Shown: positions 3,001-54,210 of the stretch, in pieces
Layout: each line of letters begins with the position of its first letter
How positions within the stretch are numbered: the first letter of the stretch is position 1
DNA from: Mizuhopecten yessoensis
Taxonomy: Eukaryota
NCBI RefSeq assembly: GCF_002113885.1
Contig: NW_018407599.1
Coordinates: forward strand, 4,157 to 68,156
DNA length: 64,000 nt
Direction: 5' to 3'
Translations under genes and position numbers: made by a program
The notes under the pieces: generated by a model
The model's database searches: none
What the model was told of the DNA's origin: nothing
Seen by the model: the letters and a program-made list of their open reading frames with translations, nothing else

Positions 3001-3055
3001 CATGTAATGTCCAGCTTGTTGTTATGGTATTGGTATCCTGTAAGGTCCAGCATGC
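1..3055. repeat. Tandem repeat, 36-bp monomer (TTTAGCTTGTTGCTATGTTACTGTTCACCTGTACTA), with 44-bp and CTGTAATGTC variants
   Basis: Periodicity read directly. The 12-aa periodic ORFs (LFSLLLCYCSPV) are a by-product. Runs off the window start. Confidence 0.95.
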
Positions 3056-4760: not shown

Positions 4761-5221
4761 GTCCTATTACAGACATCGATATTTAAACTCTCTTATAAAA
4801 TGATTGTCTAATTAAGTCAAATCCTCTAAGTACGACGTTTTCTTTCTTTAGGTAAGACGCCTCCTCATTTGTCTAGGATCTACTTGTGAATCTCAGATAT
4901 AATTTGGGCTAATGATGTAGGACATCGTTTAGTAAGACTTTCACGTATCAGTTTGGAAATCACGCAAGAAATAGTAACTGTATTATTGGTATTGTTTAAT
5001 GTATGCTATGGTGTGGAGATAGGCGAGACGGCTCCAGCAAATTGAAACTCCGACTGATTTTGAACTGATGTTGACCTGGGGTCGGTATGTAACGAGCAGG
5101 AGGTTGGTAATGTTGTAGTGTTGATAATTTGGTGTTCGTGTGTCGTCATATATCAATTCGATATTGTGTGGCCCCTTCACATGTGGACACTGTCCTTGTA
5201 AAATGCTAGCTTTTGCGAATA

Positions 5222-5380
5222 CTAAAATAACCTACACAAAGCAGGTAACCCTAACCCTAACACTAACCCTAAAATAACCTACACAAAGCAGGTAACCCTA
5301 ACCCTAACCCTAAAATAACCTACACAAAGCAGGTAACCCTAACCCTAACCCTAACCCTAAAATAACCTACCCAAAGCAGC
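5222..5380. repeat. Interstitial telomere-like (CCCTAA)n tracts alternating with AAATAACCTACACAAAGCAGG, 3-4 units
   Basis: TAACCCTAACCCTAA runs seen at about 5246, 5293 and 5334, separated by an identical spacer. Confidence 0.85.
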
Positions 5381-9027: not shown

Positions 9028-9139
9028 GTAAGTCGTCCCGGGGTAAGCTACGGGGTTATTGTCGTTATTGATATAGACCACTGGTTAATGGTATGGTATG
9101 GTGATATCGCCTAATGCATGTCAACACAACAACGTCACC

Positions 9140-12100: not shown

Positions 12101-13625
12101 GAGACACACCCGGTAGTAAGCGGTACATGTTACGAGAGAAACACACGGTAGTAAGCGGTACATGTAGCGAGAGACACACACGGTAGTAAGTGGTACATGT
12201 AACGAGAGACACACATGGTAGTAAGCCGTACATGAAACGAGAGACACACACGGTAGTAAGCAGTACAACGAGAGAAACACACGGTAGTAAGCGGTACATG
12301 TAGCGAGAGACACACACGGTAGTAAGTGGTACATGTAACGAGAGACACACACGGTAGTAAACCGTATATGTAACGAGAGAAAGACACGGTAGTAAGTGGT
12401 ACATGTAACGAGAGAAACACACGGTAGTAAGTGGTACATGTAACGAGAGACACGCACGGTAGTAAACCGTATATGTAACGAGAGACACACACGGTAGTAA
12501 GCGGTACATGTAACACACACACGGTAGTAAGCGGTACAACGAGAGAAACACACGCTAGTAAGTGGTACATGTAACGAGAGAAACACACAGTAGTAAGTGG
12601 TACATGTAACGAGAGACACACACAGTAGTAAGTGGTACATGTAACGAGAGAAACACACGGTCGTAAGCGGTACATGTAACGAGAGAAACACACAGTAGTA
12701 AGTGGTACATGTAACGAGAGAAACACACGGTAGTAAGCGGTACATGTAACGAGAGACACACACAGTAGTAAGCAGTACATGTAACGAGAGAAACACACGG
12801 TAGTAAGCGGTACAACGAGAGAAACACACGGTAGTAAGCGGTATATGTAACGAGAGAAACACACGGTAGTAAGTGGTACATGTAACGAGAGACACACACG
12901 GTAGTTAACCGTATATGTAACCAGAGACACACACGGTAGTAAGCGGTACATGTAACGAGAGAAACACACAGTCGTAAGCGGTACATGTAAAGAGAGACAC
13001 ACACAGTAGTAAGCGGTACATGTAACGAGAGACACACACAGTAGTAAGCGGTACATGTAACGAGAGAAACACACGGTAGTAAGTGGTACATGTAACGAGA
13101 GACACACACGGTAGTTATCCGTATATGTAACCAGAGACACACACGGTAGTAAGCGGTACATCTAACGAGAGAAACACACAGTAGTAAGTGGTACATGTAA
13201 CGAGAGACACACACGTTAGTTAACCGTATATGTAACCAGAGACACACACGGTTGTAAGCGGTACATGTAACGAGAGAAACACACAGTAGTGAGCGGTACA
13301 TGTAAAGAGAGACACACACAGTAGTAAGCGGTACATGTAACGAGAGACACACACAGTAGTAAGTGGTACATGTAACGAGAGAAACACACGGTAGTAAGGG
13401 GTACATGTAACGAGAGACACACACGGTAGTAAGCGGGACATGTAACGAGAGACACACACGGTAGTAAGCGGTATATGTAACGAGAGACACACACGGTAGT
13501 AAGCGGTACATGTAACGAGAGACACACACGGTAGTAAGTGGTACAACGAGAGAAACACACGGTAGTAAGCGGTATATGTAACGAGAGACACACACGGTAG
13601 TAAGCGGTACATGTAACGAGAGACA
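9140..13625. repeat. Tandem repeat, 35-bp monomer (GTAACGAGAGACACACACGGTAGTAAGCGGTACAT), about 4.5 kb
   Basis: Direct periodicity; minus-strand ORFs have a 35-aa period (3 monomers). Confidence 0.97.
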
Positions 13626-14534: not shown

Positions 14535-17030
14535 ACCGTGAGGAGAGATAAACTGGAACCGTAGACCTCTGTCATCGTAAGGGGAGATAACATGGTACTA
14601 GACCTCTGTCATCGAAAGGGGAGATAACATGGTACTAGACCTTTGTCATCGTAAGGGGAGATAACATGGTACCGTAGACCTCTGTCATCGTAAGGGGAGA
14701 TAACATGATACCGTAGACCTCTGTCATCGTAAGGGGAGATAACATGGTACCAGACCAACATGGTACCGTAGACCTCTGTCATCGTAAGGGGAGATAACAT
14801 GATACCGTAGACCTCTGTCATCGTAAGGGGAGATAACATGGTACCAGACCTTTGTCATCGTAATGGGTGGTCCTCTGTCGTCGTAAGGGGAGATAACAAG
14901 GTACCGTAGACCTCTGTCATCGTAAGGGGAGATAACATGATACCGTAGACCTCTGTCATCGTAAGGGGAGATAACATGGTACTAGGCCTCTGTCATCGTA
15001 AGGGGAGATAACATGGTACCGTGGACCTATGTCTTCTTAAGGGGAGATAACATGGTACCGTGGACCTCTGTCGTCGTAAGGGGAGATAACAAGGTACCGT
15101 AGACCTCTGTCATCGTAAGGGGAGATAACATGGTACCAGACCTTTGTCATCGTAAGGGGAGATTCCATGGTACCGTGGACCTCTGTCATCGTAAGGAGAG
15201 ATAACATGGTACCGTGGATCTCTGTCATCGTAAGGGGAAATAACATGGTACTAGACCTTTGTCATCGTAAGGGGAAATAACATGGTACCGTGGATCTCTG
15301 TCATCGTAAGGGGAAATAACATGGTACTAGACCTCTGTCATCGAAAGGGGAGATAACATGGTACCGTGGACCTATGTCTTCTTAAGGGGAGATAACATGG
15401 TACCGTGGCCCTCTGTCGTCGTAAGGGGAGATAACAAGATACCGTAGACCTCTGTCATCGTAAGGGGAGATAACATGGTACCGTGGACCTCGGTCGTCGT
15501 AAGGGGAGATAACAAGGTACCGTAGACCTCTGTCATCGTAAGGGGAGATAACATGGTACTAGACCTTTGTCATCGTAAGGGGAGATAACATGGTACCAGA
15601 CCTTTGTCATCGTAAGGGGAGATACCATGGTACCGTGGACCTCTGTCATCGTAAGGAGAGATAACATGGTACCGTGGATCTCTGTTATCGTAAGGGGAGT
15701 TAACAAGGTACCGCGGAACTCTGTCGTCGTAGGGGGAGATTACCTGGTACCGTGGACCTTTGCCATCGTAAGGGAGATGACAAGGTACCTCTGTCTTCAT
15801 AAGAGGAGATAACATGGTACCAGACCTTTGTCATCGTAAGGGGAGATAACATGGTACCGTAGACCGCTGTCATCGTAAGGGGAGATACCATGGCACCGTA
15901 GACCTCTGTCATCGTAAGGGGAGATTACATGGTACCAGACCTTTGTCATCGTAAGGGGAGATACCAAGGTACCGTAGACCTCTGTCATCGTCAGGGGAGA
16001 TAACATTGTACTAGACCTCTGTCATCGTAAGGGGAGATAACATGGTACCGTGGACCTATGTCTTCTTAAGGGGAGATAACATAGTACCGTGGACCTCTGT
16101 CATCGAAAGGGGAGATAACATGGTACCGTAGACCTATGTCTTCTTAAGGGGAGATAACATAGTACCGTGGACCGCTGTCATCGTAAGGAGAGATAACATG
16201 GTACCGTGGATCTCTGTCATCGTAAGGGGCGATAACATGGTACCGTGGATCTCTGTCATCGTAAGGGGAGTTAACAAGGTTCCGTAAAACCCTGTCGTCG
16301 TAGGGGGAGATAACCTGGTACCGTGGACCTTTGCCATCGTAAGGGAGATGACAAGGTACCTTTGTCTTCATAAAAGGAGATAACATGGTACCAGACCTTT
16401 GTCATCGTAAGGGGAGATAACATGGTACTAGACCTCTGTCATCGTAAGGGGAGATAACATGGTACCGTGGATCTCTGTCATCGTAAGGGGAGTTAACAAG
16501 GTACCGTAGAACTCTGTCGTCGTAGGGGGAGATAACCTGGTACCGTGGACCTTTGCCATCGTAAGGGAGATGACAAGGTACCTTTGTCTTCATAAAAGGA
16601 GATAACATGGTACCAGACCTTTGTCATCGTAAGGGGAGATAACAAGGTACCGTAGACCTCTGTCATCGTCAGGAGAGATAACATGGTACTCAGACCTCTG
16701 TCATCGTAAGGGTAGATAACATGGTACTAGACCTCTGTCATCGTAAGGGGAGATAACATGGTACCAGACCTTTGTCATCGTAAGGGGAGATAACATGGTA
16801 CTAGACCTCTGTCATCGTAAGGGGAGATAACATGGTACTAGACCTCTGTCATCGAAAGGGGAGATAACAAGGTACCGTAGACCTCTGTCATCGTAAGGGG
16901 AATACACATGGTACCGTAGACTGCTGTCATCGTAAGGGGAGATAACATGGTACCATACCTCTGCCATCGTAAGGGGAGATAACCTGGTACCGTGGACCTC
17001 TGTCGTCGTAAGGGAGATAACAAGGTACCC
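14535..17030. repeat. Tandem repeat, 39/37-bp monomer (GGGGAGATAACATGGTACCGTAGACCTCTGTCATCGTAA)
   Basis: Direct periodicity; recurring multi-monomer variant blocks near 15700, 16270 and 16500. Confidence 0.95.
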
Positions 17031-17194: not shown

Positions 17195-18660
17195 TTCTTT
17201 GTATGATAGAGACACTGACAGAGTTTCTAGACTTTATATTATAGATACACCGACAGAGTTTCTAGACTTTTGATTATAGATACAACTACATAGTTTCTAG
17301 AATTCGTATTATAGATACACCGAGAGAGTTTCTAGACTTTGTATTATAGATACACCGAGAGAGTTTCTAGACTTTTGATTACAGATACAACTACATAGTT
17401 TCTAGACTTTGTATCATAGATACACCGACAGAGTTTCTATACTTTGTTTTATAGATTCACTGACAGAGTTTATAGACTTTGTATTATACACTGTAAATTC
17501 ACCGACATAGTTTCTAGACTTTATATTTTACACTGTAAATTCACCGACATAGTTTCTAGACTTTGTATTAAACACTGTAAATTCACCGAAATAGTTTCTA
17601 GACTTTGTATTATAGATACACCGACAGAGTTTCTAGACTTTTTATTATAGATACACCGACAGAGTTTCTAGACTTTGTATTAAACACTGTAAATTCACCG
17701 AAATAGTTTCTAGACTTTGTATTATAGATACACCAACAGAGTTTCTAGACTTTGTATTATAGATACACCGACAGAGTTTCTAGACTTTGTATTAAACACT
17801 GTAAATTCACCGACAGAGTTTCTAGACTCTGTTTTATACTCTGTAGATTCACCGACAGAGTTTCTAGACTTTATATTATAGATGCACCGACAGAGTTTCT
17901 AGACTTTGTATTATAGATACACCGACAGAGTTTCTAGACTTTGTATTATAGAGACACTGACAGAGTTTCTGGACTTTGTATTATAGATACACCGACAGTG
18001 TTTCTAGACTTTGTTTTATAGATACACTGACAGAGTTTCTAGACTTTGTATGATAGAGACACTGACAGAGTTTCTAGACTTTGTATTATAGATACACCGA
18101 CAGAGTTTCTAGACTTTGTTTTATTCACCAACAGAGTTTCTAGACTTTGTATTGTAGATACACTGACAGAGTTTCTAGACTTCGTATTATAGATACACCG
18201 ACATAGTTTCTAGACTTTGTATTATAGATACACCGACATAGTTTCTAGACTTTGTATTATAGATACACCGAGAGAGTTTCTAGACTTTGTTTTATTTACC
18301 AACAGAGTTTCTAGACTTTGTATTATAGATACACCGACATAGTTTCTAGACTTTGTATCATAGATACACCGACATAGTTTCTAGACTTTGTATTATAGAT
18401 ACACCGACAGAGTTTCTAGACTTTGTATTATAGATACACCGAGAGAGTTTCTAGACTTTGTTTTATTTACCAACAGAGTTTCTAGACTTTGTATTATAGA
18501 TACACCGACAGAGTTTCTAGACTTTGTATTATAGATACACCAACAGAGTTTCTAGACTTTGTAATATAGATACACCGACAGAGTTTCTAGACTTTGTAAT
18601 ATGGATACACCAACAGAGTTTCTAGACTTTGTATTATAGATACACCGACAGAGTTTCTAG
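17195..18660. repeat. Tandem repeat, 35-bp monomer (AGAGTTTCTAGACTTTGTATTATAGATACACCGAC)
   Basis: Direct periodicity. Confidence 0.95.
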
Positions 18661-32229: not shown

Positions 32230-32902
32230 TCTGTTCAAGCAGATAGAAATACCCATAGCCACTGTTACTGTTCAAGCAGATAGAACTACCCATAGCCACT
32301 GTTACTGTTGAAGCAGATAGAACTACCCATAACCACGGTTACTGTTCAAGCAGATAGAACTACCCATAGCCACTGTTATTGTTCAAGCAGATAGAACTAC
32401 CCATAGCCACGGTTACTGTTCAAGCACATATAACTACTCATAGCCACTGTTACTGTTCAAGCAGATAGAACTACTCATAATCACTGTTACTGTTCAAGCA
32501 GATAGAACTACTCATAGCCACTGTTATTGTTCAAGCAGATAGAACTACCCGTAGCCACTGTTACTGTTCAAGCAGATATAGCTACCCATAGCCACTGTTA
32601 CTGTTCAAGCAGATATAGCTACCCATAGCCACTATTACTGTTCAAGCAAATAGAACTACCCATAGCCACTGTTACTGTTCAAGCAGATAGAACTACCCGT
32701 AGCCACTGTTACTGTTCAAGCAGATATACCTACCCATAGTCACTGTTACTGTTCAAGCAGATAGAACTACCCATAGCCACTGTTACTGTTTAAGCAGATA
32801 AAACTACCCATAGCCACTGTTATTGTTCAAGCAGATAGAACTACCCATAGTCACTGTTACTGTTCAAGCAGATAAAACTACCCGTAGCCACTGTTACTGT
32901 TT
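32230..32902. repeat. Tandem repeat, 37-bp monomer (CTGTTCAAGCAGATAGAACTACCCATAGCCACTGTTA)
   Basis: Direct periodicity. Confidence 0.95.
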
Positions 32903-33282
32903 AAGTGAATATTTGTCTTTTACTTTACGATTGTTTCATATCATTTCCTTTGACATATTGTATCTACCTTTTATTGGCCCTAACGACCTGTTCTGCATTG
33001 ATTAACCGTTAAGATTCAATAAGGGGATCACGTGACCTCTAATGATTCAGTCCACAGAAAAAATGTCGGAAAAAATCTGCACTTCGGGGAACATGTTAGA
33101 GGTAAACTGACAAATTCCTTTGTTTTAGATATGTATACATATCCTTTTCCATTATGATGAATGGTTTAGTTGATATACTACTGGTTATCCTTTCTCATCA
33201 TTATCCGAATATCAATTGAAATTTTCATCACCATCATAAAAATCATCTTTTTATAATCATCATCTTCATCATTACCCTTGAA

Positions 33283-33357
<75 letters not shown>
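33283..33357. repeat. (CAT)n microsatellite
   Basis: About 25 perfect CAT units. Confidence 0.98.
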
Positions 33358-33360
<3 letters not shown>

Positions 33361-33474
33361 TTGATCATTTTCATTAATCATCATCATCAAGAACACTATT
33401 GTCATAACTTGCGAACAAGCAAAGAAGAAGTCTTATTATGTTTACCTGTACACACACACATACACACACACTAT

Positions 33475-33650
33475 TGTAATGCGGATTTACCTCTTCCGGA
33501 AATCGGGGTCCGGTCCCCGGATTTGATGTTAGACGCGGAAGCACGTTATCCGGTGTTCGTTGAGTTTTACCGCAATTAAAAGGTTGCACTGAAAACTCGG
33601 ACGATCTTTGTGTTGTTATTGAAGAACACAGCCAGCCATCCGGCATAACA
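33475..33650 (+). repeat. 5' LTR (176 bp, TGTAAT...ATAACA), ATTAAA at 33575
   Basis: Matches 40209-40384 except A33574 vs C40308. Confidence 0.98.
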
Positions 33651-33652
33651 AG

Positions 33653-33670
33653 TGGTGTCAGAAGTGGGAT
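33653..33670 (+). promoter_or_regulatory. Primer-binding site TGGTGTCAGAAGTGGGAT, complementary to the 3' end of tRNA-Leu (CAG/CAA)
   Basis: Starts 2 nt after the LTR. It is the reverse complement of ATCCCACTTCTGACACCA, the conserved metazoan tRNA-Leu 3' end. Confidence 0.93.
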
Positions 33671-33928
33671 TTTGCTTATACGCCCTGCAGGGAGTCCAAA
33701 ACCCGTTTCTTTTTGTGTAATATATTGCAATTCGTACCTCAAAGTGGACAGAGGTCTGCTACAGGTAATCGCGCTGCATTTTGTGTTTGTGGGTTGTTAC
33801 TCGTCATTTAAATGATTATTTTGTAATTTGATTACTATAACTCATTTATTACTTTCACAAAGTAAGAGCACAATAACTAATTTACTTGGTTTGGGTAATT
33901 TACTGTTTTGTGTGCCTATATTTAGCCT

Positions 33929-34822
33929 TTGTTCTTGTACTTTCGTTTTACATGTATTTTCGTATTGGTGTTCACTGCGAACACTGGAATTGCTTCCAAA
34001 CGAATCGTTCACTGCGAACGGTCAAACATTATCTTTCAGAGGTCGGAGAAGGATCTCGTAGACTACCTTAAATCACACAACGTGACAATACCACCTCACG
34101 AGGCTGATTTGACCCCCCTGCTAGTATCCGACAGCAAAGGAAAGCGCCTTGCAGTGGTACACAGGGGCAGTAATCCAAAACTTCCGATACAGTTCTCATG
34201 TAAAGGTGGTGCAAACTCATCAACCCTAGTATCCCTACTAAAAGAACAAATTCCCATCCTCAAGCAGAAATTTGGTAAACCTGTTTATGTTTATTTCTGG
34301 GCTGGTACATGCGACATAACCTCAAAGCAAGGCTGTTATATAAACATTTCTGGTACCTGTGTTAACACTATACACAAAATTATCAACTGCTACAAAAGAG
34401 CGAGGGACTACACAATAAAACAGGGGTGCAAAATTCAATTTATTGGAGTACCTGTTTATTCGGTTAGCCTTTACAATGATATCCAAGGTCACCATAATCC
34501 GAGCAAGTTTCTAGAAACAGATGCTGAAGTTGCCAGCCAGGTACACTTCTTGAACTCTCAAATTGAACTTCTCAACACAGAACTTGGTACCACAACACTT
34601 AAATTCAATGCTGATCTTCGTGATTGTCGAAAAAAGGGAAAAGAGCGATATTTCATAGAATTATTGGAGGACGGTCTCCACCCTGGGGAACTCTTGGCGA
34701 GGAAGTGGTTTAGGCGACTTGAATTAAATATTGTGAAAACTTGTTTTGTGGACCAGGACATTTTGGAAGTCCACGTCGACCAACAGGAACTGTTACAGTT
34801 AGCATTTGAACAAAATGTGTGA
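33929..34822 (+). CDS. Retrotransposon-borne SGNH/GDSL hydrolase-like ORF upstream of gag (true start uncertain, possibly 34040)
   Basis: Block I-like LLVSDSKG (S at 34133), block II KGGANS, block III WAGTCD (34304), block V EDGLHP (34670), in the correct order. 297 open codons, no in-frame ATG. Confidence 0.8.
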   Translation: MFLYFRFTCIFVLVFTANTGIASKRIVHCERSNIIFQRSEKDLVDYLKSHNVTIPPHEADLTPLLVSDSKGKRLAVVHRGSNPKLPIQFSCKGGANSSTLVSLLKEQIPILKQKFGKPVYVYFWAGTCDITSKQGCYINISGTCVNTIHKIINCYKRARDYTIKQGCKIQFIGVPVYSVSLYNDIQGHHNPSKFLETDAEVASQVHFLNSQIELLNTELGTTTLKFNADLRDCRKKGKERYFIELLEDGLHPGELLARKWFRRLELNIVKTCFVDQDILEVHVDQQELLQLAFEQNV

Positions 34823-37800
34823 TAAAGAACAAGAAGTCACACCAGGGGAAGGAGAGTCTTCAGTTGACACTGCGTCAGCTGCGGCATATGATATGCTTCA
34901 ATTCGTAATGAAAAGTTTTGATGAGCAGCGTGATACACAAATGAAGATGTTTCGGCAAACTATGGTGGAGTTTGAAGACGAAAAGAAACGAAGCTTCGAG
35001 GCACAAAGTGAAATGATGAAGTCCTTCATGCAAGAGACACGTCATGATATTCAAAATGCCATAGGACATCAAGCACCGCTTGCACAGAGTACATTTTCAT
35101 CTATGGGTCCACAACAGGAATTTGGAAGGTCGACAGACAGAGGATCGTTTGGTGGTTTTGACGAAGAACTCCGGGTGATCCAGGATAGAGAACGCTCATA
35201 TTCAAGTCCAAACTTAAATGGACAGAACTCTGCACTATCCAGTACCCCCTCATTGGAAAGACAGGATATGGGACGTATGCTGAACAGACATCAAGGAAAG
35301 GGTCCTCAAACAAAACTTCCAGTGTTTGAGGGAAAGGAGGATATAGAGGTTTTTATTGTTCCCTTTGAACGGTTAGCAGAGCGTTATAACTGGACAGACA
35401 ATGAGAAAGTGGACAGACTCTACGAATGTCTAAAAGGAAGGGCCATGTGGTACATCTGCTCCTTACCAAGGGAGATGAGAAGAGATTACAGGAATCTAAA
35501 GGATAGTCTGATCAAGCGGTTCGGACGAAGAGACCCACCCACAACAGCGAGATCAAAATTACACGAAGTAAGGCAACGCAGCCTAAGTAATGACGAATTT
35601 GGGGAAGAGGTTTGGCGCCTAGTTACCCTTGCTTATCCTAATGTAGATCTCGACTTGCAAGATCAATTGGCTGCAGAGGCATTCCTCAAGGGGTACAAGA
35701 ACCCCAAGGTATCTTATGATGTGTTGAACAAGAAACCAAAAACTATCAATGAGGCTATTGAAATGGTTACTTCACAAGAACATAACTTCAAAGCCACCAT
35801 CGGTAGGGAGAAAGAGATACGAGACAAGGCTCGGCGCGTTTCATGGGCTGATGGGGCTGGTGTAAAAAATGTCTCCGATGACGAAGAAGCGTTGAATACA
35901 CAGCGTGTTCAACTGCCAAACACTGCCTTAGAGTCGGACAACCTCAGTAAATTAGATGTTCGGATGAAACAGCTTGAGGATCTTGTTCGGAATAGCTCGC
36001 TAGAGTGTCGCGCAAGATTCGACCAGTTAGGGAACGAACGCCAAAGTGGGTTTAGCAAGGAAGGAAAGGAATGTTACAGATGTGGTGGTAAGGGACACTT
36101 CCAAAGAGATTGCAGCTCTAGGAGATCAAGATCGCCCACACCACCGAACAGTCCCCGTTCTCGCTCACCACAGCATGATGTTAAGATCACCCGGACCAAT
36201 AGGACAGAGAAAAGCATTATCGTCCCAGTAACGGTCAATGGAACAACAACTGAAGCGGTTATTGATACTGGGGCCGACGCCACAGTCATCTCTGAGAAAT
36301 GGGCAAATGAAATAAATTTGCTGTATGCTAAGCCAAAGAAAGAAATTCGTCTAATGACAGCTGAGGATGGTGCAGAGATGACAGGATTAGGTGTAGTCAC
36401 TGCGACTCTCCAAATTGGGGAAGAGGTGAGGGAATTACCAGTTGTGATAGCTCCTATCAGAGACAACATACTGGTGGGCATTGATCTACTCCAATCTGTA
36501 CAGGCCATTATCCATACTGGAGAAAAGAACCTGGAAGTCAACGGAAAAGTAATCCCAGGACACTCTCAGTTGAACAGATCTGGGACTGCTATTGCCAGGA
36601 GTATAGTTAGAGTACATGCAGATGTTGTGGTGCCACCAGGAAGTGAGAAAATAATCATCGGAAGATTGGAGACACCATCAGACACTTCTCAAGCAATACT
36701 GGAGGCATTCAATCATCAAAGCGGAATGCGAGTTGGGTCATGTCTTGTCTCTATGAATCAAACTATTCCTGTGAGAGTTCTCAACCTGAAGGATAGCGAG
36801 ATTAAACTCACAAATGGCACATTTCTAGGAAAAGTTGAGGAAGCTGACCTAGCTTGGGACCCAAATATGAGCAGGGAGCCTTCCGTAAACACCAGTGTCG
36901 AGCCAGAACATTTACAAGAGGCCCCTGGGACAAACGGAGAGGTTCCGTTGCATGTACAGGATATTTTTGAAGAGTCCTCAAAAGGACTGTCATCAAATCA
37001 AAAAGAGGATCTCTGTATGCTGCTGAATGACTTTCCTGATATATTTGCTAAGGATGACTACGACCTAGGCAGATTCAGCGGAGTCAGACATAAGATTGAC
37101 ACAGGTGAAAACAAACCTATACGTCAACCCGCAAGAAGGACACCATTGGGTTTTCAAGCTGAGGAGGACGCCCATCTACAAAAACTTCTTGACACTGGTG
37201 TTGTCATTCCATCTAGTTCTGAATGGGCATCACCGGTAGTACTTGTTCGCAAGAAAGATGGTGGTGTGCGTTGGTGCATAGACTATCGAAAGGTGAATGA
37301 GGTCAGTGTAAAAGATGCTTACCCACTTCCAAAAATTGAAGAGTGCCTTGATACGCTTAGTGGTGCGACTCTATTTTCCACCGTAGACTTAATGAGTGGC
37401 TACCACCAAATTGAAGTTGATGAGATGGACAGATCAAAGACCGCCTTTGTCACCAAACAGGGGCTCTTTGAGTACACCAGAATGCCTTTTGGCTTATCCA
37501 ACTCTCCCTCAACTTTCCAGCGTGCAATGGAGCTCGTACTTAGAGGGTTTCAGTGGGTCATACTTCTTATTTATCTGGACGATGTGATAGTGGCATCCAG
37601 GTCTTTTGAAGAACATATGCAACATCTGCGTCAGGTTTTCTCCCGGATCCGTGAACACGGTCTGAAGCTGAAAGCCAAGAAGTGCCGTTTGTTTCGTGAG
37701 GAAGTCCTCTTCCTGGGACACATTATTAACGGTGATGGAATCTCCACCAATCCAAAGTTGGTAGATGACGTCCTGAATTGGCCTGTGCCAAGCAACTGTA

Positions 37801-40178
37801 GGGAGCTTCAGTCTTTTCTAGGACTTACCAACTACTACAGACGGTTCGTTCAAAATTATGCAGAGATCGCTCTGCCACTGCATGACCTCACACGGAAGGA
37901 GGTAAAATTTGTATGGGAAGACCGTCAGTGTGAGGCATTCGAGGCCCTGAAGAAGGCAATTACCACTGCTCCGATATTGTCATACCCGTTGGAGAATTGC
38001 AAATTTGTCATAGATACGGATGCTTCTAACAGGAGTATAGGCGCCGTTCTTTCGCAAGTCCAAGATGGGGAGGAGAAAGTTGTTGCATATGCAAGTAGAA
38101 GACTGACCCCTGCACAGGAGAAATATTGTGTGACACGACGCGAACTTCTTGCAGTTGTTGCTTTCTGCCAGCATTTCAAACATTATCTTCTTGGCCGGAG
38201 GTTCTTATTACGCACAGACCATAGCAGTTTGTCATGGCTTTTCCGATTCAAGTCACCACAGGGACAGCTGGCGAGATGGCTAGAGGAGGTCAGTCAATAC
38301 TCTTTTGACATCGAACACCGTGCTGGGAAGCTGCATGTGAACGCTGATGCCATGTCACGGATTCCGGATCACGATTCGTGCCCTTGCTACTTCGCGGGTG
38401 CCACCGTTGAAACTCTACCCTGTGGAGGATGTATGTACTGTGCAAAACTACAGACTGCGTGGGAAAGATTCGAGGAGGATGTTGACGATATTGTGCCTAT
38501 AGCTGTTCGTTCGGCGGAGGTAACTGCTGTCGAAAAACACTCTGAGACCGGAGAGGACTCTAATACGAAGGACGATATTCCTCAATGTAACTGGCTACAG
38601 ACCAAAAGTCCGATGGAACTTCACGAAGAACAGATGCAAGATGAGGATCTAAAACAACTGTATTCATGTGTGGCCAACAGCGAGACAGTTCCTCTGGGTG
38701 AGGCGCAAGCAAGAAGTCCTGCTCTGCGGAAGTATCTACTAACCCTTCAGCAGTTCAAACTGATACACGATGTTCTCTACTACCAGTGGGAGGCAAATGG
38801 ACAGGAGTCACTGCGACTCCTGGTTCCATTCCAGATGAGAAAAGAGATCATGCAGGCATGTCATGAAGCTGTTTACTCCGGTCATCAAGGGGAGAAGAGA
38901 ACTCTGGAACGAGTGAAGAAGGACTTTCACTGGCACAACATGTCGATGGATGTGAGCATATTTGTTCGGAAATGTCATGTATGTGCCGCTGAAAAGAAGA
39001 GTAGTAGAACTATGAGAGCACCTCTTCAGACCTACATCTGCGGAGCGCCAATGGACAGGATACAATTGGATGTCGTGGGGCCTTTTCCTATTAGTGATGC
39101 TGGGAACAAATACATACTTGTCATCATCGACCAGTTCACGAAGTGGGTCGAGGCTTACCCAATCACACAACAGGACAGTAACACGACAGCAAAAAAACTG
39201 GTCCTGGAGTTCATCTCTAGATTTGGCGTACCCCTGGAGATCCACACGGATCAAGGACGAAACTTCCAAAGCGCCCTGTTCAAGGAAGTATGCCGGTTAC
39301 TCGGAATCGCACAAACCAGGACTACGCCCTATCACCCTTCATCTAATGGTCAGGTTGAGCGGTTTAACCGCACGCTGTTGCAGATGATCAGGTGTTATCT
39401 AGATCATGGCCAGGCGCATTGGGATGAGAACATTCCCCTTCTTCTGTCTGCTTATCGAAGTACGCCACACCCTGCGACAGGATTTACACCAAACCTGTTG
39501 ATGCTGGGTAGGGAGGTCCATTCTCCTCCCGAGCTGATCTACATGGATCCGGATATTTCGCGTTCCTCTGATGACGCACCCACCTACCTCGACCGGATGT
39601 TAGAGGGTATGCACATTACAGAGGAATTAGCTAGGAAAACATTGAGGGCTTCAAAGGTACATCAGAAAAAAGTATATGATCTACGGGCTAGGGGAAGAGA
39701 GTACCACGTCGGGGATCTTGTATACGTGAAGAACCAATCACGATCTGTTGGACAATCTCCGAAACTCCAATCTGTTTGGAATGGTCCTTTTGTGATCACC
39801 AAGAAATTTGGTCCGGTCGTGTATGAGGTCCGTGGCCGCAAGAAGGCTTCAGTTCTTCACCATGACCGGCTAAAACAATATTTGTCTGAGGTCATCCCGG
39901 CCTGGGTTACCAAGATAAAGCATGATCTTGGTACCTCCTCTCTCCCAACGATTGCTGAGGAAGACCATCTTCCAACCATGGATAAGAAGTTCGGGACAGA
40001 GGAAAACCACCACGAGTCGCAGAACAGCCAACAATCGCTGAAAGCCAGTTTACCAGAGGAAGAGCCAAAGACACCTGTGCCAACTGGGATGTGTTCACAG
40101 CGAACCATCTCAGATGAACCATCCCGGTCCTCGCGTTACGGCCGGGCATATAAGCAGCCTACCAAGCTTGACCTTTAG
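34815..40178 (+). CDS. gag-pol: Gag-Pol polyprotein: capsid-like gag, CCHC knuckle, aspartic protease, RT, RNase H, integrase
   Basis: CYRCGGKGHFQRDC (36072), IDTGAD (36261), WASPVVLV/MPFGL/YLDD (37572), DTDAS...RELLAVV, HHCC, D-D-E (QLD/HTD/QVE), WNGPF. Uninterrupted; first ATG at 34815. Confidence 0.98.
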   Translation: MCDKEQEVTPGEGESSVDTASAAAYDMLQFVMKSFDEQRDTQMKMFRQTMVEFEDEKKRSFEAQSEMMKSFMQETRHDIQNAIGHQAPLAQSTFSSMGPQQEFGRSTDRGSFGGFDEELRVIQDRERSYSSPNLNGQNSALSSTPSLERQDMGRMLNRHQGKGPQTKLPVFEGKEDIEVFIVPFERLAERYNWTDNEKVDRLYECLKGRAMWYICSLPREMRRDYRNLKDSLIKRFGRRDPPTTARSKLHEVRQRSLSNDEFGEEVWRLVTLAYPNVDLDLQDQLAAEAFLKGYKNPKVSYDVLNKKPKTINEAIEMVTSQEHNFKATIGREKEIRDKARRVSWADGAGVKNVSDDEEALNTQRVQLPNTALESDNLSKLDVRMKQLEDLVRNSSLECRARFDQLGNERQSGFSKEGKECYRCGGKGHFQRDCSSRRSRSPTPPNSPRSRSPQHDVKITRTNRTEKSIIVPVTVNGTTTEAVIDTGADATVISEKWANEINLLYAKPKKEIRLMTAEDGAEMTGLGVVTATLQIGEEVRELPVVIAPIRDNILVGIDLLQSVQAIIHTGEKNLEVNGKVIPGHSQLNRSGTAIARSIVRVHADVVVPPGSEKIIIGRLETPSDTSQAILEAFNHQSGMRVGSCLVSMNQTIPVRVLNLKDSEIKLTNGTFLGKVEEADLAWDPNMSREPSVNTSVEPEHLQEAPGTNGEVPLHVQDIFEESSKGLSSNQKEDLCMLLNDFPDIFAKDDYDLGRFSGVRHKIDTGENKPIRQPARRTPLGFQAEEDAHLQKLLDTGVVIPSSSEWASPVVLVRKKDGGVRWCIDYRKVNEVSVKDAYPLPKIEECLDTLSGATLFSTVDLMSGYHQIEVDEMDRSKTAFVTKQGLFEYTRMPFGLSNSPSTFQRAMELVLRGFQWVILLIYLDDVIVASRSFEEHMQHLRQVFSRIREHGLKLKAKKCRLFREEVLFLGHIINGDGISTNPKLVDDVLNWPVPSNCRELQSFLGLTNYYRRFVQNYAEIALPLHDLTRKEVKFVWEDRQCEAFEALKKAITTAPILSYPLENCKFVIDTDASNRSIGAVLSQVQDGEEKVVAYASRRLTPAQEKYCVTRRELLAVVAFCQHFKHYLLGRRFLLRTDHSSLSWLFRFKSPQGQLARWLEEVSQYSFDIEHRAGKLHVNADAMSRIPDHDSCPCYFAGATVETLPCGGCMYCAKLQTAWERFEEDVDDIVPIAVRSAEVTAVEKHSETGEDSNTKDDIPQCNWLQTKSPMELHEEQMQDEDLKQLYSCVANSETVPLGEAQARSPALRKYLLTLQQFKLIHDVLYYQWEANGQESLRLLVPFQMRKEIMQACHEAVYSGHQGEKRTLERVKKDFHWHNMSMDVSIFVRKCHVCAAEKKSSRTMRAPLQTYICGAPMDRIQLDVVGPFPISDAGNKYILVIIDQFTKWVEAYPITQQDSNTTAKKLVLEFISRFGVPLEIHTDQGRNFQSALFKEVCRLLGIAQTRTTPYHPSSNGQVERFNRTLLQMIRCYLDHGQAHWDENIPLLLSAYRSTPHPATGFTPNLLMLGREVHSPPELIYMDPDISRSSDDAPTYLDRMLEGMHITEELARKTLRASKVHQKKVYDLRARGREYHVGDLVYVKNQSRSVGQSPKLQSVWNGPFVITKKFGPVVYEVRGRKKASVLHHDRLKQYLSEVIPAWVTKIKHDLGTSSLPTIAEEDHLPTMDKKFGTEENHHESQNSQQSLKASLPEEEPKTPVPTGMCSQRTISDEPSRSSRYGRAYKQPTKLDL

Positions 40179-40196
40179 CAGGAGCTAAAGGAGCCT

Positions 40197-40208
40197 GGAA
40201 GGGGGTGG
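40197..40208 (+). promoter_or_regulatory. Polypurine tract GGAAGGGGGTGG
   Basis: Directly abuts the 3' LTR. Confidence 0.85.
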
Positions 40209-40384
40209 TGTAATGCGGATTTACCTCTTCCGGAAATCGGGGTCCGGTCCCCGGATTTGATGTTAGACGCGGAAGCACGTTATCCGGTGTTCGTTGAGTT
40301 TTACCGCCATTAAAAGGTTGCACTGAAAACTCGGACGATCTTTGTGTTGTTATTGAAGAACACAGCCAGCCATCCGGCATAACA
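40209..40384 (+). repeat. 3' LTR (176 bp)
   Basis: 175/176 identical to the 5' LTR; followed by TSD CTAT. Confidence 0.98.
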
Positions 40385-41689
40385 CTATTCTTACATTTAA
40401 CTTGCACGCTCACACCTACAACTTTACACAAAAAGGAAGAAAACATTAAAAAGGCAGATTGAGAGACAGAAGACGGAGACAGACAGACAGATAGATAGAC
40501 AGACAGACGTAATTATTATGTATTATGTCAGATATATGTCTTATACTGTCATACATTCACTTACGCATACTAATAAATACAGACATACACAAGAGAAAAG
40601 ACGGAAGGCAGAGAAAAAAAGTCCATGTGATGATGAATTTATATTTCTGTGTAATAGATATAATGATCGGCCAGCTCTGTAAAGAAATGTAAGGAGGAAC
40701 AAAGGTGTTTACAAAGTTAAATATCAAGTTTGATAAGATTTTCCCATTTTCTCCTTTTCATTTTCATTATCAACTCAACAAACGAAAAAGATTGTTTGTT
40801 GATAGAAAAAGGTATGAGCAATGCATGAGTGTGTGTCTCTAAACCTTGTAGAAGTGTTTTGACTTCTTGGCATTCCCACAGAATATGAGTGATTGGTTCT
40901 CTTTCCCAGTTACACAAATTACATAATGGACTGGTGACTTACTTTCCTTTAAAAAGTCTGGAATTAGTGGTAAGAATGTGATGAGATATCCTGTACTGAA
41001 GTCACTGAAGTTTAGTATTGTTTGTTTCCTGAAATGGCATTTTAATAGAATATTTCCCAGTCTCTGTTGGTTAGTTAGAACTGTTCCCCCCACTTAGCTT
41101 TACCAGTTGGTTCTCTCAAAGTTTTAGTTAAAATATTATAAAAATCTTTTGATCCTTTGAAATGTTTCAGCAATTCAGATTTAGTCCTTACTCCTTTTGT
41201 ATACTATTGTTTATAAAAGATAGGTTTTCCTGATATAGTAATATTTGTATTGAACCAGAGTGGTATTTCTAACACCCACTTCTCCTTTCTAATAGTCATT
41301 TCTTTTGAAATATGTAATTTATACTATGTTTTAAAAACGTCTTTCCAAAACGTATTTATTGTTACATATACTTAAACATTTTGTAACATACTCACCTCCA
41401 ATGTTAAGTAGAAAATCTGTGTTTACACAAATTTTTAATATTGAGAACCATTAACCTGGTGAATGATAAAGTCTTCTAACCCAATTCAGCTTCAATGAAT
41501 TTGCAAAAGCCCTTATATGAACCATTTTTAATCCACCATTTACATAATCTTGAACAACAATATTTCTTTAAACTTTTTCAACTTAACTATTCCACAAAAA
41601 TTCACATAAGATGGAATTAATTTTGTTAAATGTCTTTTTATCTGGGTTTAGAAAAGCTATACAAATGTGATTAGATTGTGAAATCAACA

Positions 41690-44739: not shown

Positions 44740-47700
44740 AGATTACGACAATATTACTACCCAAACACCTGGATCACGACAATATTACTACCCTTACACA
44801 TGAATTACGACCATATTACTACCCTAACACATAGATTATGACATTATTACTACCCTAACACCTGAATCACGACAATATTACTACCCTAACACATGGATTA
44901 CAACAATATTACTACCCTAACACATGGATCACGACAATATTAATACCCTAACACCTGGATCACGACAATATTACTACCCTAACACATGGATTACGACATT
45001 ATTACTACCCTAACACATGGATCACGACATTATTACTACCCTAACACCTGGATCACGACAACATTACTACCCTAACACATGGAACACGACAATATTACTA
45101 TCCTAACACATGTATCACGACAAAATTACTACACTAACACCTGGATCACGACAATATTACTACACTAACACCTGGATCACGACAATATTACTATCCTAAC
45201 ACATTGATTACCACCATATTACTACCTTAACACCTGGACCACGACAATATTACTACCCTAACACATGGATCACGACAATATTACTACCCTAACAAATGGA
45301 CTACGACCACATTACTACCCTAACACATGGATTACGAAAATATCACTACCCTAACACATGGATTACGACAATATCACTACCCTAACACATGGATAACGAC
45401 AATATTACTACCCTAACACCTGGATCACGACAATATTACTACCCTAACACATTGATTACAACCATATTACTACCCTAACACATTGATTACCACCATATTA
45501 CTACCCTAACACATCGATTACGACCATATTACTACCCTAACATATGGATTACGACAATATTACTACCCTAACACATTGATTACCACCATATTACTACCCT
45601 AACACATCGATTACGACCATATTACTACCCTAACACATGGATTACGACAATATTACTACCCTAACACATTGATTACCACCATATTACTACCCTAACACAT
45701 CGATTACGACCATATTACTACCCTAACACATGGATTACGACAATATTACTACCCTAACACATTGATTACCACCATATTACTACCCTAACACATCGATTAC
45801 GACCATATTACTACCCTAACACATGGATTACGACAATATTACTACCCTAACACATTGATTACCACCATATTACTACCCTAACACATCGATTACGACCATA
45901 TTACTACCCTAACACATGGATTACGACAATATTACTACCCTAACACATTGATTACCACCATATTACTACCCTAACACATCGATTACGACCATATTACTAC
46001 CCTAACACATGGATTACGACAATATTACTACCCTAACACATTGATTACCACCATATTACTACCCTAACACATCGATTACGACCATATTACTACCCTAACA
46101 CATGGATTACGACAATATTACTACCCTAACACATTGATTACCACCATATTACTACCCTAACACATCGATTACGACCATATTACTACCCTAACACATGGAT
46201 TACGACAATATTACTACCCTAACACATTGATTACCACCATATTACTACCCTAACACATCGATTACGACCATATTACTACCCTAACACATGGATTACGACA
46301 ATATTACTACCCTAACACATTGATTACCACCATATTACTACCCTAACACATCGATTACGACCATATTACTACCCTAACACATGGATTACGACAATATTAC
46401 TACCCTAACACATTGATTACCACCATATTACTACCCTAACACATCGATTACGACCATATTACTACCCTAACACATGGATTACGACAATATTACTACCCTA
46501 ACACATTGATTACCACCATATTACTACCCTAACACATCGATTACGACCATATTACTACCCTAACACATGGATTACGACAATATTACTACCCTAACACATT
46601 GATTACCACCATATTACTACCCTAACACATCGATTACGACCATATTACTACCCTAACACATGGATTACGACAATATTACTACCCTAACACATTGATTACC
46701 ACCATATTACTACCCTAACACATCGATTACGACCATATTACTACCCTAACACATGGATTACGACAATATTACTACCCTAACACATTGATTACCACCATAT
46801 TACTACCCTAACACATCGATTACGACCATATTACTACCCTAACACATGGATTACGACAATATTACTACCCTAACACATTGATTACCACCATATTACTACC
46901 CTAACACATCGATTACGACCATATTACTACCCTAACACATGGATTACGACAATATTACTACCCTAACACATTGATTACCACCATATTACTACCCTAACAC
47001 ATCGATTACGACCATATTACTACCCTAACACATGGATTACGACAATATTACTACCCTAACACATTGATTACCACCATATTACTACCCTAACACATCGATT
47101 ACGACCATATTACTACCCTAACACATGGATTACGACAATATTACTACCCTAACACATTGATTACCACCATATTACTACCCTAACACATCGATTACGACCA
47201 TATTACTACCCTAACACATGGATTACGACAATATTACTACCCTAACACATTGATTACCACCATATTACTACCCTAACACATCGATTACGACCATATTACT
47301 ACCCTAACACATGGATTACGACAATATTACTACCCTAACACATTGATTACCACCATATTACTACCCTAACACATCGATTACGACCATATTACTACCCTAA
47401 CACATGGATTACGACAATATTACTACCCTAACACATTGATTACCACCATATTACTACCCTAACACATCGATTACGACCATATTACTACCCTAACACATGG
47501 ATTACGACAATATTACTACCCTAACACATTGATTACCACCATATTACTACCCTAACACATCGATTACGACCATATTACTACCCTAACACATGGATTACGA
47601 CAATATTACTACCCTAACACATTGATTACCACCATATTACTACCCTAACACATCGATTACGACCATATTACTACCCTAACATATGGATTACGACAATATT

Positions 47701-49555
47701 ACTACCCTAACACATTGATTACCACCATATTACTACCCTAACACATCGATTACGACCATATTACTACCCTAACACATCGATTACGACAATATTACTACCC
47801 TAACACATTGATTACCACCATATTACTACACTAACACCTGGATCACGACAATATTACTACACTAACACCTGGATCACGACAATATTACTATCCTAACACA
47901 TTGATTACGACAATATCACTACCTTAACACATGGATTACGACAATATTACTACCCTAACACCTGGATCACGACAATATTACTACCCTAAAACATTGATTA
48001 CCACCATATTACTACCCTGACACATTGATTACCACCATATTACTACCCTAACACATAGATTACGACCATATTACTACCCTAACTCATGGATCACGACAAT
48101 ATTACTACTCTAACACATGGATCACGACAATATTACTCCCCCAACACATTGATTACCACTGTATTACTACCCTAACACATCGATTATGACCATATTACTA
48201 CCCTAACACATAGATTACGACCATATTAGTACCCTAACACATGGATCACGATCATATTACTACCCTAACACATTGATTACCAACATATTACTACCCTAAC
48301 ATATGGATTACGACAATATTACTACCTTAACACATTGATTACCACCATATTACTACACTAACACCTGCATCACGACAATATTACTACACTAACACCTGGA
48401 TCCCGACAATATTACTATCCTAACACATTGATTACGACAATATCACTACCTTAACACATGGATTACGACAGTATTACTACCCTAACACATGGATTACAAC
48501 AATATTACTACCCTAACACATGAATTACGACCATATTACTACTCTAACACATTGATTACGACCATATTACTACCCTACCACATCGATTACGACCATATTA
48601 CTCCCCTAACATATGGATTACGACAATATTACTACCTTAACACATTGATTACCACCATATTACTACCCCCACACATCGATTACGACCATATTAGTACCCT
48701 AACACATGGATCACGATCATATATTTTTGTAACTTCCTAACACCTGGTTTAACGATTACGACCATATTACTACCCTACCACATCGATTACGACCATATTA
48801 CTTCCCTAACATATGGATTACGACAATATTACTTCCCTAACACATTTATTACCACCATATTACTACCCTGACACATTGATTACAACCATATTACTACCCT
48901 AACAAATGGACTACCACCATATTGCTACCCTAACACATGGATCACGATCATATATTTTTGTAACTTCCTAACACCTGGTTTAACGATTACGACCATATTA
49001 CTACCCTAACTCATGGATCACGACAATATTACTACTCTAACACATGTATTACGACAATATTACTACCCTAACTCCTGGATCACGACAATATTACTATCCT
49101 AACACATTGATTACAACAATATCACTACCTTAACACATGGATTACGACAGTATTACTACCCTAACACATGGATCACGACCATATTACTACCCTAACATAT
49201 GGATTACGGCAATATTACTACCCTAACACATTGATTCCCACCATATTACTACCCTAACACATCGATTATGACCATATTACTACCCTAACACATAGATTAT
49301 GACATTATTACTACCCTAACACCTGAATCACGACAATATTACTACTCTAACACATGGATTATGACAATATTACTACCCTAACACATAGATTACGACCATA
49401 TTACTACCCTAACACATGGATTACGACATTATTACTACCCTAACACATGGACCACGACAATATTACTACACTAACACATGGATCACGACATTATTACTAC
49501 CCTAACACATGGATCACGATCATATATTTTTGTAACTTCCTAACACCTGGTTTAA
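44740..49555. repeat. 31-bp satellite (ATATTACTACCCTAACACATGGATTACGACA) with a homogeneous 93-bp trimeric higher-order core at about 45470-47760
   Basis: Strict cycling of GGATTACGACA / TGATTACCACC / CGATTACGACC variants. Confidence 0.97.
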
Positions 49556-52779: not shown

Positions 52780-54210
52780 CTCCCCACCCCCTTCTGTATA
52801 CATCCCCCTCCCCCGTCTTACATATATCTCTCCCCACCCCCTTCTGTATACATCCCCCCTCCCCNNNNNNNNNNNNNNNNNNNNNNNNNNNNNNNNNNNN
52901 NNNNNNNNNNNNNNNNNNNNNNNNNNNNNNNNNNNNNNNNNNNNNNNNNNNNNNNNNNNNNNNNNNNNNNNNNNNNNNNNNNNNNNNNNNNNNNNNNNNN
53001 NNNNNNNNNNNNNNNNNNNNNNNNNNNNNNNNNNNNNNNNNNNNNNNNNNNNNNNNNNNNNNNNNNNNNNNNNNNNNNNNNNNNNNNNNNNNNNNNNNNN
53101 NNNNNNNNNNNNNNNNNNNNNNNNNNNNNNNNNNNNNNNNNNNNNNNNNNNNNNNNNNNNNNNNNNNNNNNNNNNNNNNNNNNNNNNNNNNNNNNNNNNN
53201 NNNNNNNNNNNNNNNNNNNNNNNNNNNNNNNNNNNNNNNNNNNNNNNNNNNNNNNNNNNNNNNNNNNNNNNNNNNNNNNNNNNNNNNNNNNNNNNNNNNN
53301 NNNNNNNNNNNNNNNNNNNNNNNNNNNNNNNNNNNNNNNNNNNNNNNNNNNNNNNNNNNNNNNNNNNNNNNNNNNNNNNNNNCCCCGTCTTACATATACC
53401 TCTCCCCACCCCTTCTCTATACATCCACACAGTCCCCCCATCTTACATATATCTCTCTCCACTCCTTCTGTATACATCCCCCCGTCTTACATATACCTCT
53501 CCCCACCCCTTCTCTATACATCCACACANNNNNNNNNNNNNNNNNNNNNNNNNNNNNNNNNNNNNNNNNNNNNNNNNNNNNNNNNNNNNNNNNNNNNNNN
53601 NNNNNNNNNNNNNNNNNNNNNNNNNNNNNNNNNNNNNNNNNNNNNNNNNNNNNNNNNNNNNNNNNNNNNNNNNNNNNNNNNNNNNNNNNNNNNNNNNNNN
53701 NNNNNNNNNNNNNNNNNNNNNNNNNNNNNNNNNNNNNNNNNNNNNNNNNNNNNNNNNNNNNNNNNNNNNNNNNNNNNNNNNNNNNNNNNNNNNNNNNNNN
53801 NNNNNNNNNNNNNNNNNNNNNNNNNNNNNNNNNNNNNNNNNNNNNNNNNNNNNNNNNNNNNNNNNNNNNNNNNNNNNNNNNNNNNNNNNNNNNNNNNNNN
53901 NNNNNNNNNNNNNNNNNNNNNNNNNNNNNNNNNNNNNNNNNNNNNNNNNNNNNNNNNNNNNNNNNNNNNNNNNNNNNNNNNNNNNNNNNNNNNNNNNNNN
54001 NNNNNNNNNNNNNNNNNNNNNNNNNNNNNNNNNNNNNNNNNNNNNNNNNNNNNNNNNNNNNNNNNNNNNNNNNNNNNNNNNNNNNNNNNNNNNNNNNNNN
54101 NNNNNNNNNNNNNNNNNNNNNNNNNNNNNNNNNNNNNNNNNNNNNNNNNNNNNNNNNNNNNNCCCCCCCCCCCCCCCCCCGTCTTACATATACCTCTCCC
54201 CACCTCTTCG
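52780..54210. repeat. C-rich ~50-bp tandem repeat (CCCCGTCTTACATATACCTCTCCCCACCCCTTCTGTATACAT) broken by two N gaps
   Basis: The same unit lies on all gap flanks; gaps at about 52865-53382 and 53529-54161. Confidence 0.85.

Follow-up and report, generated by a model that had tools for sequence, protein, structure and literature searches.

A Ty3/Gypsy retrotransposon of the Yesso scallop with a predicted SGNH esterase gene upstream of gag, from a family shared with LINEs

Introduction

Few genes of retroelements are understood as poorly as their accessory esterases. The question raised by the locus described here is whether such a gene is an integral part of a Ty3/Gypsy long terminal repeat (LTR) retrotransposon and, if so, how it is expressed and where else it occurs. 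The element is ~6.9 kb long and occupies positions 33475-40384 of a 64,000-nt stretch of Mizuhopecten yessoensis DNA (contig NW_018407599.1, positions 4,157 to 68,156 of the forward strand; this whole stretch is called the window below). From inspection of the letters alone, an open reading frame (ORF) near its 5′ end had been taken to encode an SGNH/GDSL hydrolase (the original prediction).

We give a probability of about 0.78 to the following overall reading. The scallop Gypsy element carries an integral 5′ SGNH esterase gene belonging to a family shared with long interspersed nuclear elements (LINEs), the start codon of this gene is supplied by splicing, and gag is entered at a stop-start junction. 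The original prediction of a Gypsy LTR lineage with a dedicated 5′ SGNH accessory gene is borne out by the fold of the modelled protein, by the position of the gene, by its divergence in step with reverse transcriptase (RT) and integrase and by the constraint on its sequence.

The predicted esterase and its catalytic residues

The frame extends over positions 33926-34822 of the forward strand, 298 codons without a stop (33929-34822 in the ORF listing). Four SGNH motifs are found in order: LLVSDSKG with the nucleophile Ser69, KGG with Gly94, WAGTCD with Cys128 at the Asn site, and DGLHP with Asp248 and His251. The AlphaFold2 model, made with a 20-sequence alignment, has a mean predicted local distance difference test (pLDDT) score of 82.5 and a predicted template modelling (pTM) score of 0.77; core residues 40-297 are mostly >85, and the first 37 codons of the frame are <50. 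The model consists of an SGNH core with short terminal helices only, has the three-layer alpha/beta/alpha SGNH architecture and places each motif after the strand expected for its block, with SDSK following strand 62-67.

A Foldseek search of the model against the PDB produced 133 matches at E ≤ 1e-3. Among the matches listed, all natural proteins are SGNH/GDSL-type hydrolases or acyltransferases (GDSL lipases, acylhydrolases, the peptidoglycan O-acetyltransferase PatB, a sialic-acid esterase and platelet-activating factor acetylhydrolase), with template modelling scores of 0.6-0.74 on the target; a few designed scaffolds are listed besides. The viral library BFVD yielded 91 matches at E ≤ 1e-3, and those with names are mostly phage SGNH/GDSL esterases or tail proteins. 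Structural comparison, which the original prediction had proposed as a check, places the modelled protein among the SGNH/GDSL hydrolases.

The catalytic columns were counted in an alignment of 80 sequences from an unbiased HMMER search. The nucleophile Ser of block I (SDSK) is present in 80/80 sequences and the Asp before it in 77/80; the block II Gly (Gly94) is present in 76/80; in block V (DGxHP) the Asp is found in 79/80 and the His in 80/80. The four blocks and the intact Ser-Asp-His triad had thus been read correctly from the window, as had the exchange of Asn for Cys in block III. In the latter column (GTCD, where the canonical motif is GxND) Cys is found in 76/80 relatives and Asn in 4/80. 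Since Asn is the only other residue there, the alignment of this column is supported, and the pattern shows a conserved substitution of the oxyanion Asn and not decay. The Cys-bearing catalytic signature is identical in Gypsy-linked and LINE-linked members, a comparison biased by the choice of its loci with a pattern containing GTC; the count in 80 sequences is unaffected by this choice.

No 19-residue segment of the protein exceeds 1.3 on the Kyte-Doolittle scale, and no N-terminal hydrophobic stretch, signal peptide or membrane helix was detected. The idea that the protein substitutes for env, raised in the original prediction, was rejected for lack of any such hydrophobic segment or signal-like N-terminus; judged by these predicted properties, the esterase is not an envelope protein. 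The model describes it as a soluble protein of ~260 residues with an SGNH/GDSL hydrolase fold and a Ser-Asp-His triad.

The competing explanation that survives best accepts the SGNH fold and makes hydrolysis irrelevant. The protein would then be a structural or nucleic-acid- or lipid-binding partner of Gag, similar to the first-ORF proteins (ORF1p) of LINEs, with a pocket that serves for binding only. The exchange of the oxyanion Asn for Cys in nearly all members fits this explanation, as does a conserved acidic C-terminal helix beyond the SGNH fold; also, according to a 2026 preprint (10.64898/2026.01.13.699120), which cites earlier work, L2/CR1 transposition is seemingly independent of esterase activity. 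We consider it improbable all the same: Ser and His are invariant and the Asp is kept in all sequences except one, across about 25-50% identity, which is a pattern of catalytic constraint, and the members without the Cys all have the canonical catalytic Asn in its place. An SGNH esterase remains the preferred reading of the frame.

Conservation of the gene in Gypsy elements

The frame is far beyond chance, because 419 representative clusters match it at E ≤ 1e-3 and relatives ~50% identical reach E of about 1e-77. Nearly all the matching sequences are stand-alone proteins of 230-270 residues. The named sources are all bivalves (Mizuhopecten, Pinctada and three Mytilus species) or bins of bivalve symbionts. 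In every relative with sufficient flanking DNA the esterase gene stands at the head of a retroelement. A Gypsy gag or gag-pol gene directly follows it at loci L002, L003, L004, L006/L012, L011, L028, L047, L052, L053/54 and L055-58 and on the contig of protein P0027. At least 10 Gypsy lineages other than that of the window carry the same gene at the same place, which is the consistent 5′ location that the original prediction had asked for among homologs.

The main Gypsy-linked esterase clade is monophyletic with 91% bootstrap support in a neighbour-joining tree. Trees of the esterase, RT and integrase of the same elements have the same topology, and the pairwise identities of the esterase correlate with those of RT and integrase (r=0.90-0.91 for 45 pairs, which are not independent). 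Within the esterase the proportion of nonsynonymous differences (pN) is 0.14-0.33, against a saturated proportion of synonymous differences (pS) of 0.82-0.92; pN is about equal to that of gag in the same pairs. The comparison of SGNH and RT trees and the measure of constraint among copies, both suggested along with the original prediction, came out in its favour. Taken together, tree congruence, pN far below pS and conserved position show that the predicted gene has been inherited vertically with its element, as an old, constrained and integral gene of a bivalve Gypsy clade.

A few relatives come from bacterial assemblies. L003 and L052 (GCA_040505915.1, a metagenome-assembled genome (MAG) labelled 'Sedimenticola sp.') are complete animal Gypsy elements within a bacterial bin, and P0039 comes from a MAG of 'Candidatus Thiodiazotropha sp.', a bivalve symbiont. 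Animal Gypsy elements in symbiont MAGs are most likely mis-binned host DNA. The ends of the L003 contig (1-91 and 8575-8665) repeat each other, which suggests tandem copies or a circular assembly. Tandem repeats separate pol from the next esterase gene in L003 (5484-6143) and in L011 (4025-4336), with units of 178 nt and 78 nt.

Structure and age of the scallop element

The features of the element, with the evidence for each, are as follows.

33471-33474, + strand: left copy of the target-site duplication, CTAT; identical four bases lie beyond the 3′ LTR (40385-40388)
33475-33650, + strand: 5′ LTR, 176 nt, TG...CA ends; direct repeat of 40209-40384 with 1 mismatch
33651-34822, + strand: leader and SGNH esterase gene, one break (initiator absent); splice model, fold and catalytic columns
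33653-33670, + strand: putative primer-binding-like site, begins TGG, 2 nt past the 5′ LTR; sequence reading
ending at 33764, + strand: predicted esterase mini-exon; NCBI gene model of the sister copy (P0001/L001)
33765-34039, + strand: predicted esterase leader intron, GT-AG, 275 nt; NCBI gene model of P0001/L001
34040-34822, + strand: predicted esterase body exon, 260 codons and stop; NCBI gene model of P0001/L001
34815-40178, + strand: gag-pol, single intact ORF, 1787 codons from the first ATG; Pfam matches, stop-free
35430-35693, + strand: gag capsid-like domain; Pfam
36069-36116, + strand: CCHC knuckle; Pfam
36219-36512, + strand: protease; Pfam
37245-37727, + strand: RT; Pfam
37914-38300, + strand: RNase H; Pfam
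38823-39338, + strand: integrase; Pfam
39711-39875, + strand: integrase C-terminal SH3-like domain; Pfam
40197-40208, + strand: polypurine-like tract adjoining the 3′ LTR; sequence reading
40209-40384, + strand: 3′ LTR; direct repeat of the 5′ LTR
40385-40388, + strand: right copy of the target-site duplication, CTAT; matches the left copy

Pfam matches in one 1790-codon frame give a gag with a CCHC motif followed by protease, RT, RNase H and integrase, the Ty3/Gypsy order; gag-pol of the window copy has no breaks. The LTRs, identical at 175/176 positions, have TG..CA ends and are flanked on both sides by the CTAT duplication; their near-identity indicates a recent insertion. A string resembling the putative TGG-initiated primer-binding-like site is also found at the start of the relative L002. 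The window contains no tRNA gene.

A sister copy (L001) is present on Mizuhopecten yessoensis contig NEDP02001908.1, 99.8% identical to the window over 1291 nt (2/1291 positions differ). We considered whether the sister copy is truncated and rejected this, the N run beyond the esterase stretch being an assembly gap; this gap (9044-13560) cuts the sister copy past the esterase gene and accounts for the odd 3′ end of the NCBI model P0001. The element in the window is best described as a Ty3/Gypsy retrotransposon of the autonomous type that was inserted recently and whose host is the Yesso scallop or a very close relative.

Leader intron and start codon

According to the original prediction, a stop-free coding frame lies between the primer site and gag, inside the LTRs. 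The frame and its location stand; its first 37 codons, those modelled with low pLDDT, most likely belong to an intron, with the coding body starting at 34040. The window frame contains no in-frame ATG. The NCBI model of the sister copy (P0001) begins with a 15-codon mini-exon carrying an ATG, continues with a GT-AG intron equivalent to window positions 33765-34039 and enters the body at the equivalent of 34040 (RSEKDL). The arrangement recurs at loci L002 and L055-58, whose esterases are only 50-55% identical to that of the window: the mini-exon, here of 11 codons, starts with ATG and encodes a conserved peptide, the GT donor is in phase 0, and a pyrimidine-rich acceptor ends in AG immediately before RSEKDL. 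The esterase body has no ATG in these relatives, and likewise none in L053/54. A different arrangement is seen at L003, L052, L004, L006, L011, L028 and L047, where a single ATG stands at the position of the body start and no splice is needed. The conserved signals and the gene model show the gene structure in the subclade of the window, a body without ATG preceded by a leader mini-exon of 11-15 codons and a GT-AG intron; on removal of this intron the mini-exon would supply the start.

The intron is kept in copies with near-identical LTRs; therefore, the RNA that was reverse-copied must have been unspliced. Esterase would be made only from spliced RNA, with the unspliced RNA staying as the genome.

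Methionine is nearly absent from the interior of these esterase ORFs (~250 codons), with none in the spliced subclade and one, the initiator, in most others. The 'M' at the beginning of several database proteins (e.g. P0004) was rejected as a genuine Met, as it reflects a non-ATG start chosen by the gene caller.

Junction between the esterase gene and gag-pol

In the window gag-pol is in the +1 frame, and its ATG precedes the last base of the esterase stop by 7 nt. For four other loci, the distance of the first ATG of the downstream gene from this last base is listed here.

L004: gag-pol ATG, 10 nt before
L052: gag-pol ATG, 10 nt before
L053: ATG of the next ORF, 10 nt before
L011: gag-pol ATG, 2 nt after

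In most lineages the first codon of gag-pol overlaps the esterase stop or directly adjoins it, and this geometry suggests that gag-pol is probably translated by termination-reinitiation on the esterase mRNA. Leaky scanning to gag was also considered and rejected as unlikely, given six out-of-frame ATGs in the esterase body.

The same overlap could be read in another way, with +1 ribosomal frameshifting giving an esterase-Gag-Pol polyprotein that has the esterase at its N-terminus. Frameshifting in this direction occurs in Ty1 and Ty3, and in the window, L002, L004, L011 and L052 gag-pol is in the +1 frame with respect to the esterase and the two frames overlap. Yet the overlap is just 20 nt long in the window, an ATG is present within 10 nt of the esterase stop in five lineages, and other lineages have different relative frames or genes 140-200 nt apart. 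A polyprotein of this kind is thus very unlikely, and stop-start coupling remains the preferred description of the junction.

A family shared with LINEs

Relatives of the window esterase are also found outside Gypsy elements. A LINE-linked protein, P0064, is 33% identical to the window protein (E=3.9e-24). It occurs on four contigs, where the esterase is followed by an 873-residue ORF with a PHD finger and then by an APE endonuclease and RT. In nine further metagenome loci the esterase lies upstream of a LINE-type APE or RT; the loci with LINE context are L007-10, L014, L017, L023, L024, L030, L032, L040, L043 and L050. In CR1-like elements this pairing of esterase and PHD has been reported before (Kapitonov and Jurka 2003, as cited in PMC5408684). 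One gene model of Mytilus edulis fuses the esterase to a PHD domain. These matches show that the predicted window esterase shares its family with the first ORF of CR1-like LINEs (esterase, PHD ORF, APE-RT).

The original prediction had named SGNH domains in LINE ORF1; this holds, and extends to homology with the first ORF of CR1-like LINEs, while the GDSL ORFs of bdelloid LTR elements had been overlooked. Occurrence of one family in LINEs and in Gypsy elements means that the module has moved between retroelement classes. L028, L047 and L046 are Gypsy-linked and fall outside the main Gypsy clade, with weak tree support, and there may have been more than one LINE/Gypsy transfer.

The fused gene model lies at L005 (8001-9672; Mytilus edulis CAJPWZ010000276.1). 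In it Ser and Asn replace the block V Asp and His, and no RT is found within 8 kb of it. The model may represent the decayed 5′ end of a LINE, or else a copy that has been domesticated.

The window frame could also be a one-off, either a LINE 5′ fragment nested in this Gypsy leader, which the original prediction had named as a refuting case, or a chance open frame. This finds some footing in the family also being the first ORF of LINEs, but it can be dismissed, given the recurrence of the gene at the same place in the other Gypsy lineages, where it is not surrounded by remnants of LINEs, the stop-start junction with gag, the phylogeny matching that of RT and integrase, and the sister copy in the same genome.

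One esterase family, then, serves both capsid-forming LTR elements and capsid-less LINEs in the same animal group. Its role must therefore be one that is useful to both styles of replication, which narrows the possibilities.

Proposed function and strength of the interpretation

By analogy with the ORF1p of the element ZfL2-1, the esterase would be a cytoplasmic enzyme with an ester or a lipid as its substrate, possibly one that transfers acyl groups, and would help to assemble particles or ribonucleoproteins or to bring them to membranes. Targeting to membranes or germ plasm and counter-defence, raised in the original prediction, are candidate roles. With Cys at the oxyanion site the chemistry may be changed.

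Several observations weigh against the overall reading. Pfam families Lipase_GDSL and Lipase_GDSL_2 do not match the window protein, and sub-threshold matches to the two families were seen in only 16/80 and 12/80 relatives (best E 1.3e-4). A PDB sequence search with the window protein gave nothing useful; in a PDB profile search only the DGxHP block was aligned, weakly. With the canonical oxyanion Asn missing, catalysis may differ or be weak. The trees are neighbour-joining trees of few sequences and are unrooted, and the saturation of synonymous sites extends to the closest pairs, so that constraint is expressed by raw pN and pS and not by a dN/dS ratio. The splice model comes from one NCBI gene model together with the conserved signals. 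The window copy itself lacks the esterase initiator of the sister copy, which is its one break, there being no stops, frameshifts, insertions or deletions. Finally, the esterase and gag-pol genes of L006, L028 and L047 are the ones separated by 140-200 nt, contrary to stop-start coupling; by their layout, such lineages must use another route to gag.

A bolder version of the interpretation is tentative, and we would sooner doubt it than adopt it: a single Cys-for-Asn esterase module would circulate between bivalve LINEs and Gypsy elements, under splice control in one Gypsy subclade, with gag-pol translated by reinitiation. If true, the division into genomic and subgenomic RNA would resemble that of retroviruses, serving a 5′ accessory enzyme instead of env, and the two element classes might have in common an altered chemistry marked by the Cys variant, such as acyl transfer or a substrate related to thioesters.

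The family offers a natural series for comparison, with the leader intron present or absent and the gag starts overlapping or separated. The conserved oxyanion-site Cys can be used as a family marker in sequence searches. Since standard domain scans miss the esterase gene, it is probably under-annotated in mollusc genomes.

Genomic setting of the insertion

Minisatellite arrays that are unrelated to one another make up most of the window (4-3051, 3511-4763, 9140-13623, 14537-17029, 17197-18660, 32231-32905, 44741-49525, 60765-63482 and others). Their periods are 27-48 nt, their copy numbers reach 153, and the element sits between arrays. Long minus-strand ORFs produced by the 35-nt array at 9140-13623 are spurious. 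Just upstream of the 5′ LTR, at about 33285-33360, there is a long (CAT)n microsatellite. Telomeric hexamers resembling (CCCTAA)n occur in a 41/47-nt repeat unit at 5222-5379; with the satellite-rich setting, these hexamers hint at a subtelomeric or heterochromatic insertion site. N runs at 556, 52865-53382, 53529-54162 and 58130-58165 are assembly gaps or masked stretches.

Comparison with known systems

Coupled translation at a stop-start junction is known for the UAAUG junction of the silkworm LINE SART1, and reinitiation is known in caliciviruses and influenza B virus. As in these systems, the stop of the upstream scallop ORF overlaps or abuts the downstream ATG; unlike them, the scallop junction is known from sequence geometry alone.

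The closest analogue that has been studied is the esterase of ZfL2-1 ORF1p, from the CR1/L2/RTEX group of non-LTR elements (PDB 4c1b; PMC3905857). Common to both are the SGNH fold, the Ser-Asp-His triad and a location 5′ of the replication genes; in addition, there is direct homology (E about 1e-24) between the scallop esterase and the esterase ORFs that head bivalve or marine LINEs with a PHD ORF and APE-RT. Searching the PDB sequences with a profile (E ≤ 10) did not return 4c1b, and the structure is not among the matches listed by Foldseek (133 in all, part of them listed). The differences are equally clear. The scallop host is an LTR/Gypsy element with its own gag, and the esterase lies inside the LTRs; the scallop protein stands alone at ~260 residues and has no coiled-coil part, unlike ZfL2-1 ORF1p; and ZfL2-1 has N195 at the oxyanion site where the scallop family has Cys.

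SGNH or GDSL ORFs have been added to other retroelements as well. An SGNH hydrolase ORF is located downstream of the tyrosine recombinase in amphibian Ngaro elements of the DIRS order (PMC9210276), and GDSL ORFs are present in Athena/Terminon elements (PMC5408684). These resemble the scallop element in having an added SGNH ORF and differ from it in element class and host. Full-text literature searches turned up no 5′ esterase in a Gypsy element, and prior annotation in Repbase, Dfam or GyDB is possible. As far as searches of the full-text literature show, the apparently new features are the position 5′ of gag in a Gypsy element, the bivalve hosts, the direct homology to LINE esterases, the predicted splice-supplied start, the stop-start junction and the family-wide Cys.

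The closest parallel among LTR elements is given by the Vesta elements of bdelloid rotifers, which carry a GDSL esterase/lipase ORF3 located 3′ of pol (PMC5408684). Compared by description, Vesta ORF3 and the scallop gene are both GDSL/SGNH genes of an LTR element; both keep their catalytic residues and lack membrane and coiled-coil segments, and in both cases the gene type is common to a second retroelement class (PMC5408684). For Vesta ORF3 this second class is the Penelope-like Athena elements, and ORF3 is reported not to cluster with LINE esterases (PMC5408684). The scallop gene, in contrast, is shared with LINEs, depends on splicing in one subclade according to the gene model, is linked to gag by a stop-start junction and, in the window and in all Gypsy relatives seen, lies 5′ of gag and not 3′ of pol.
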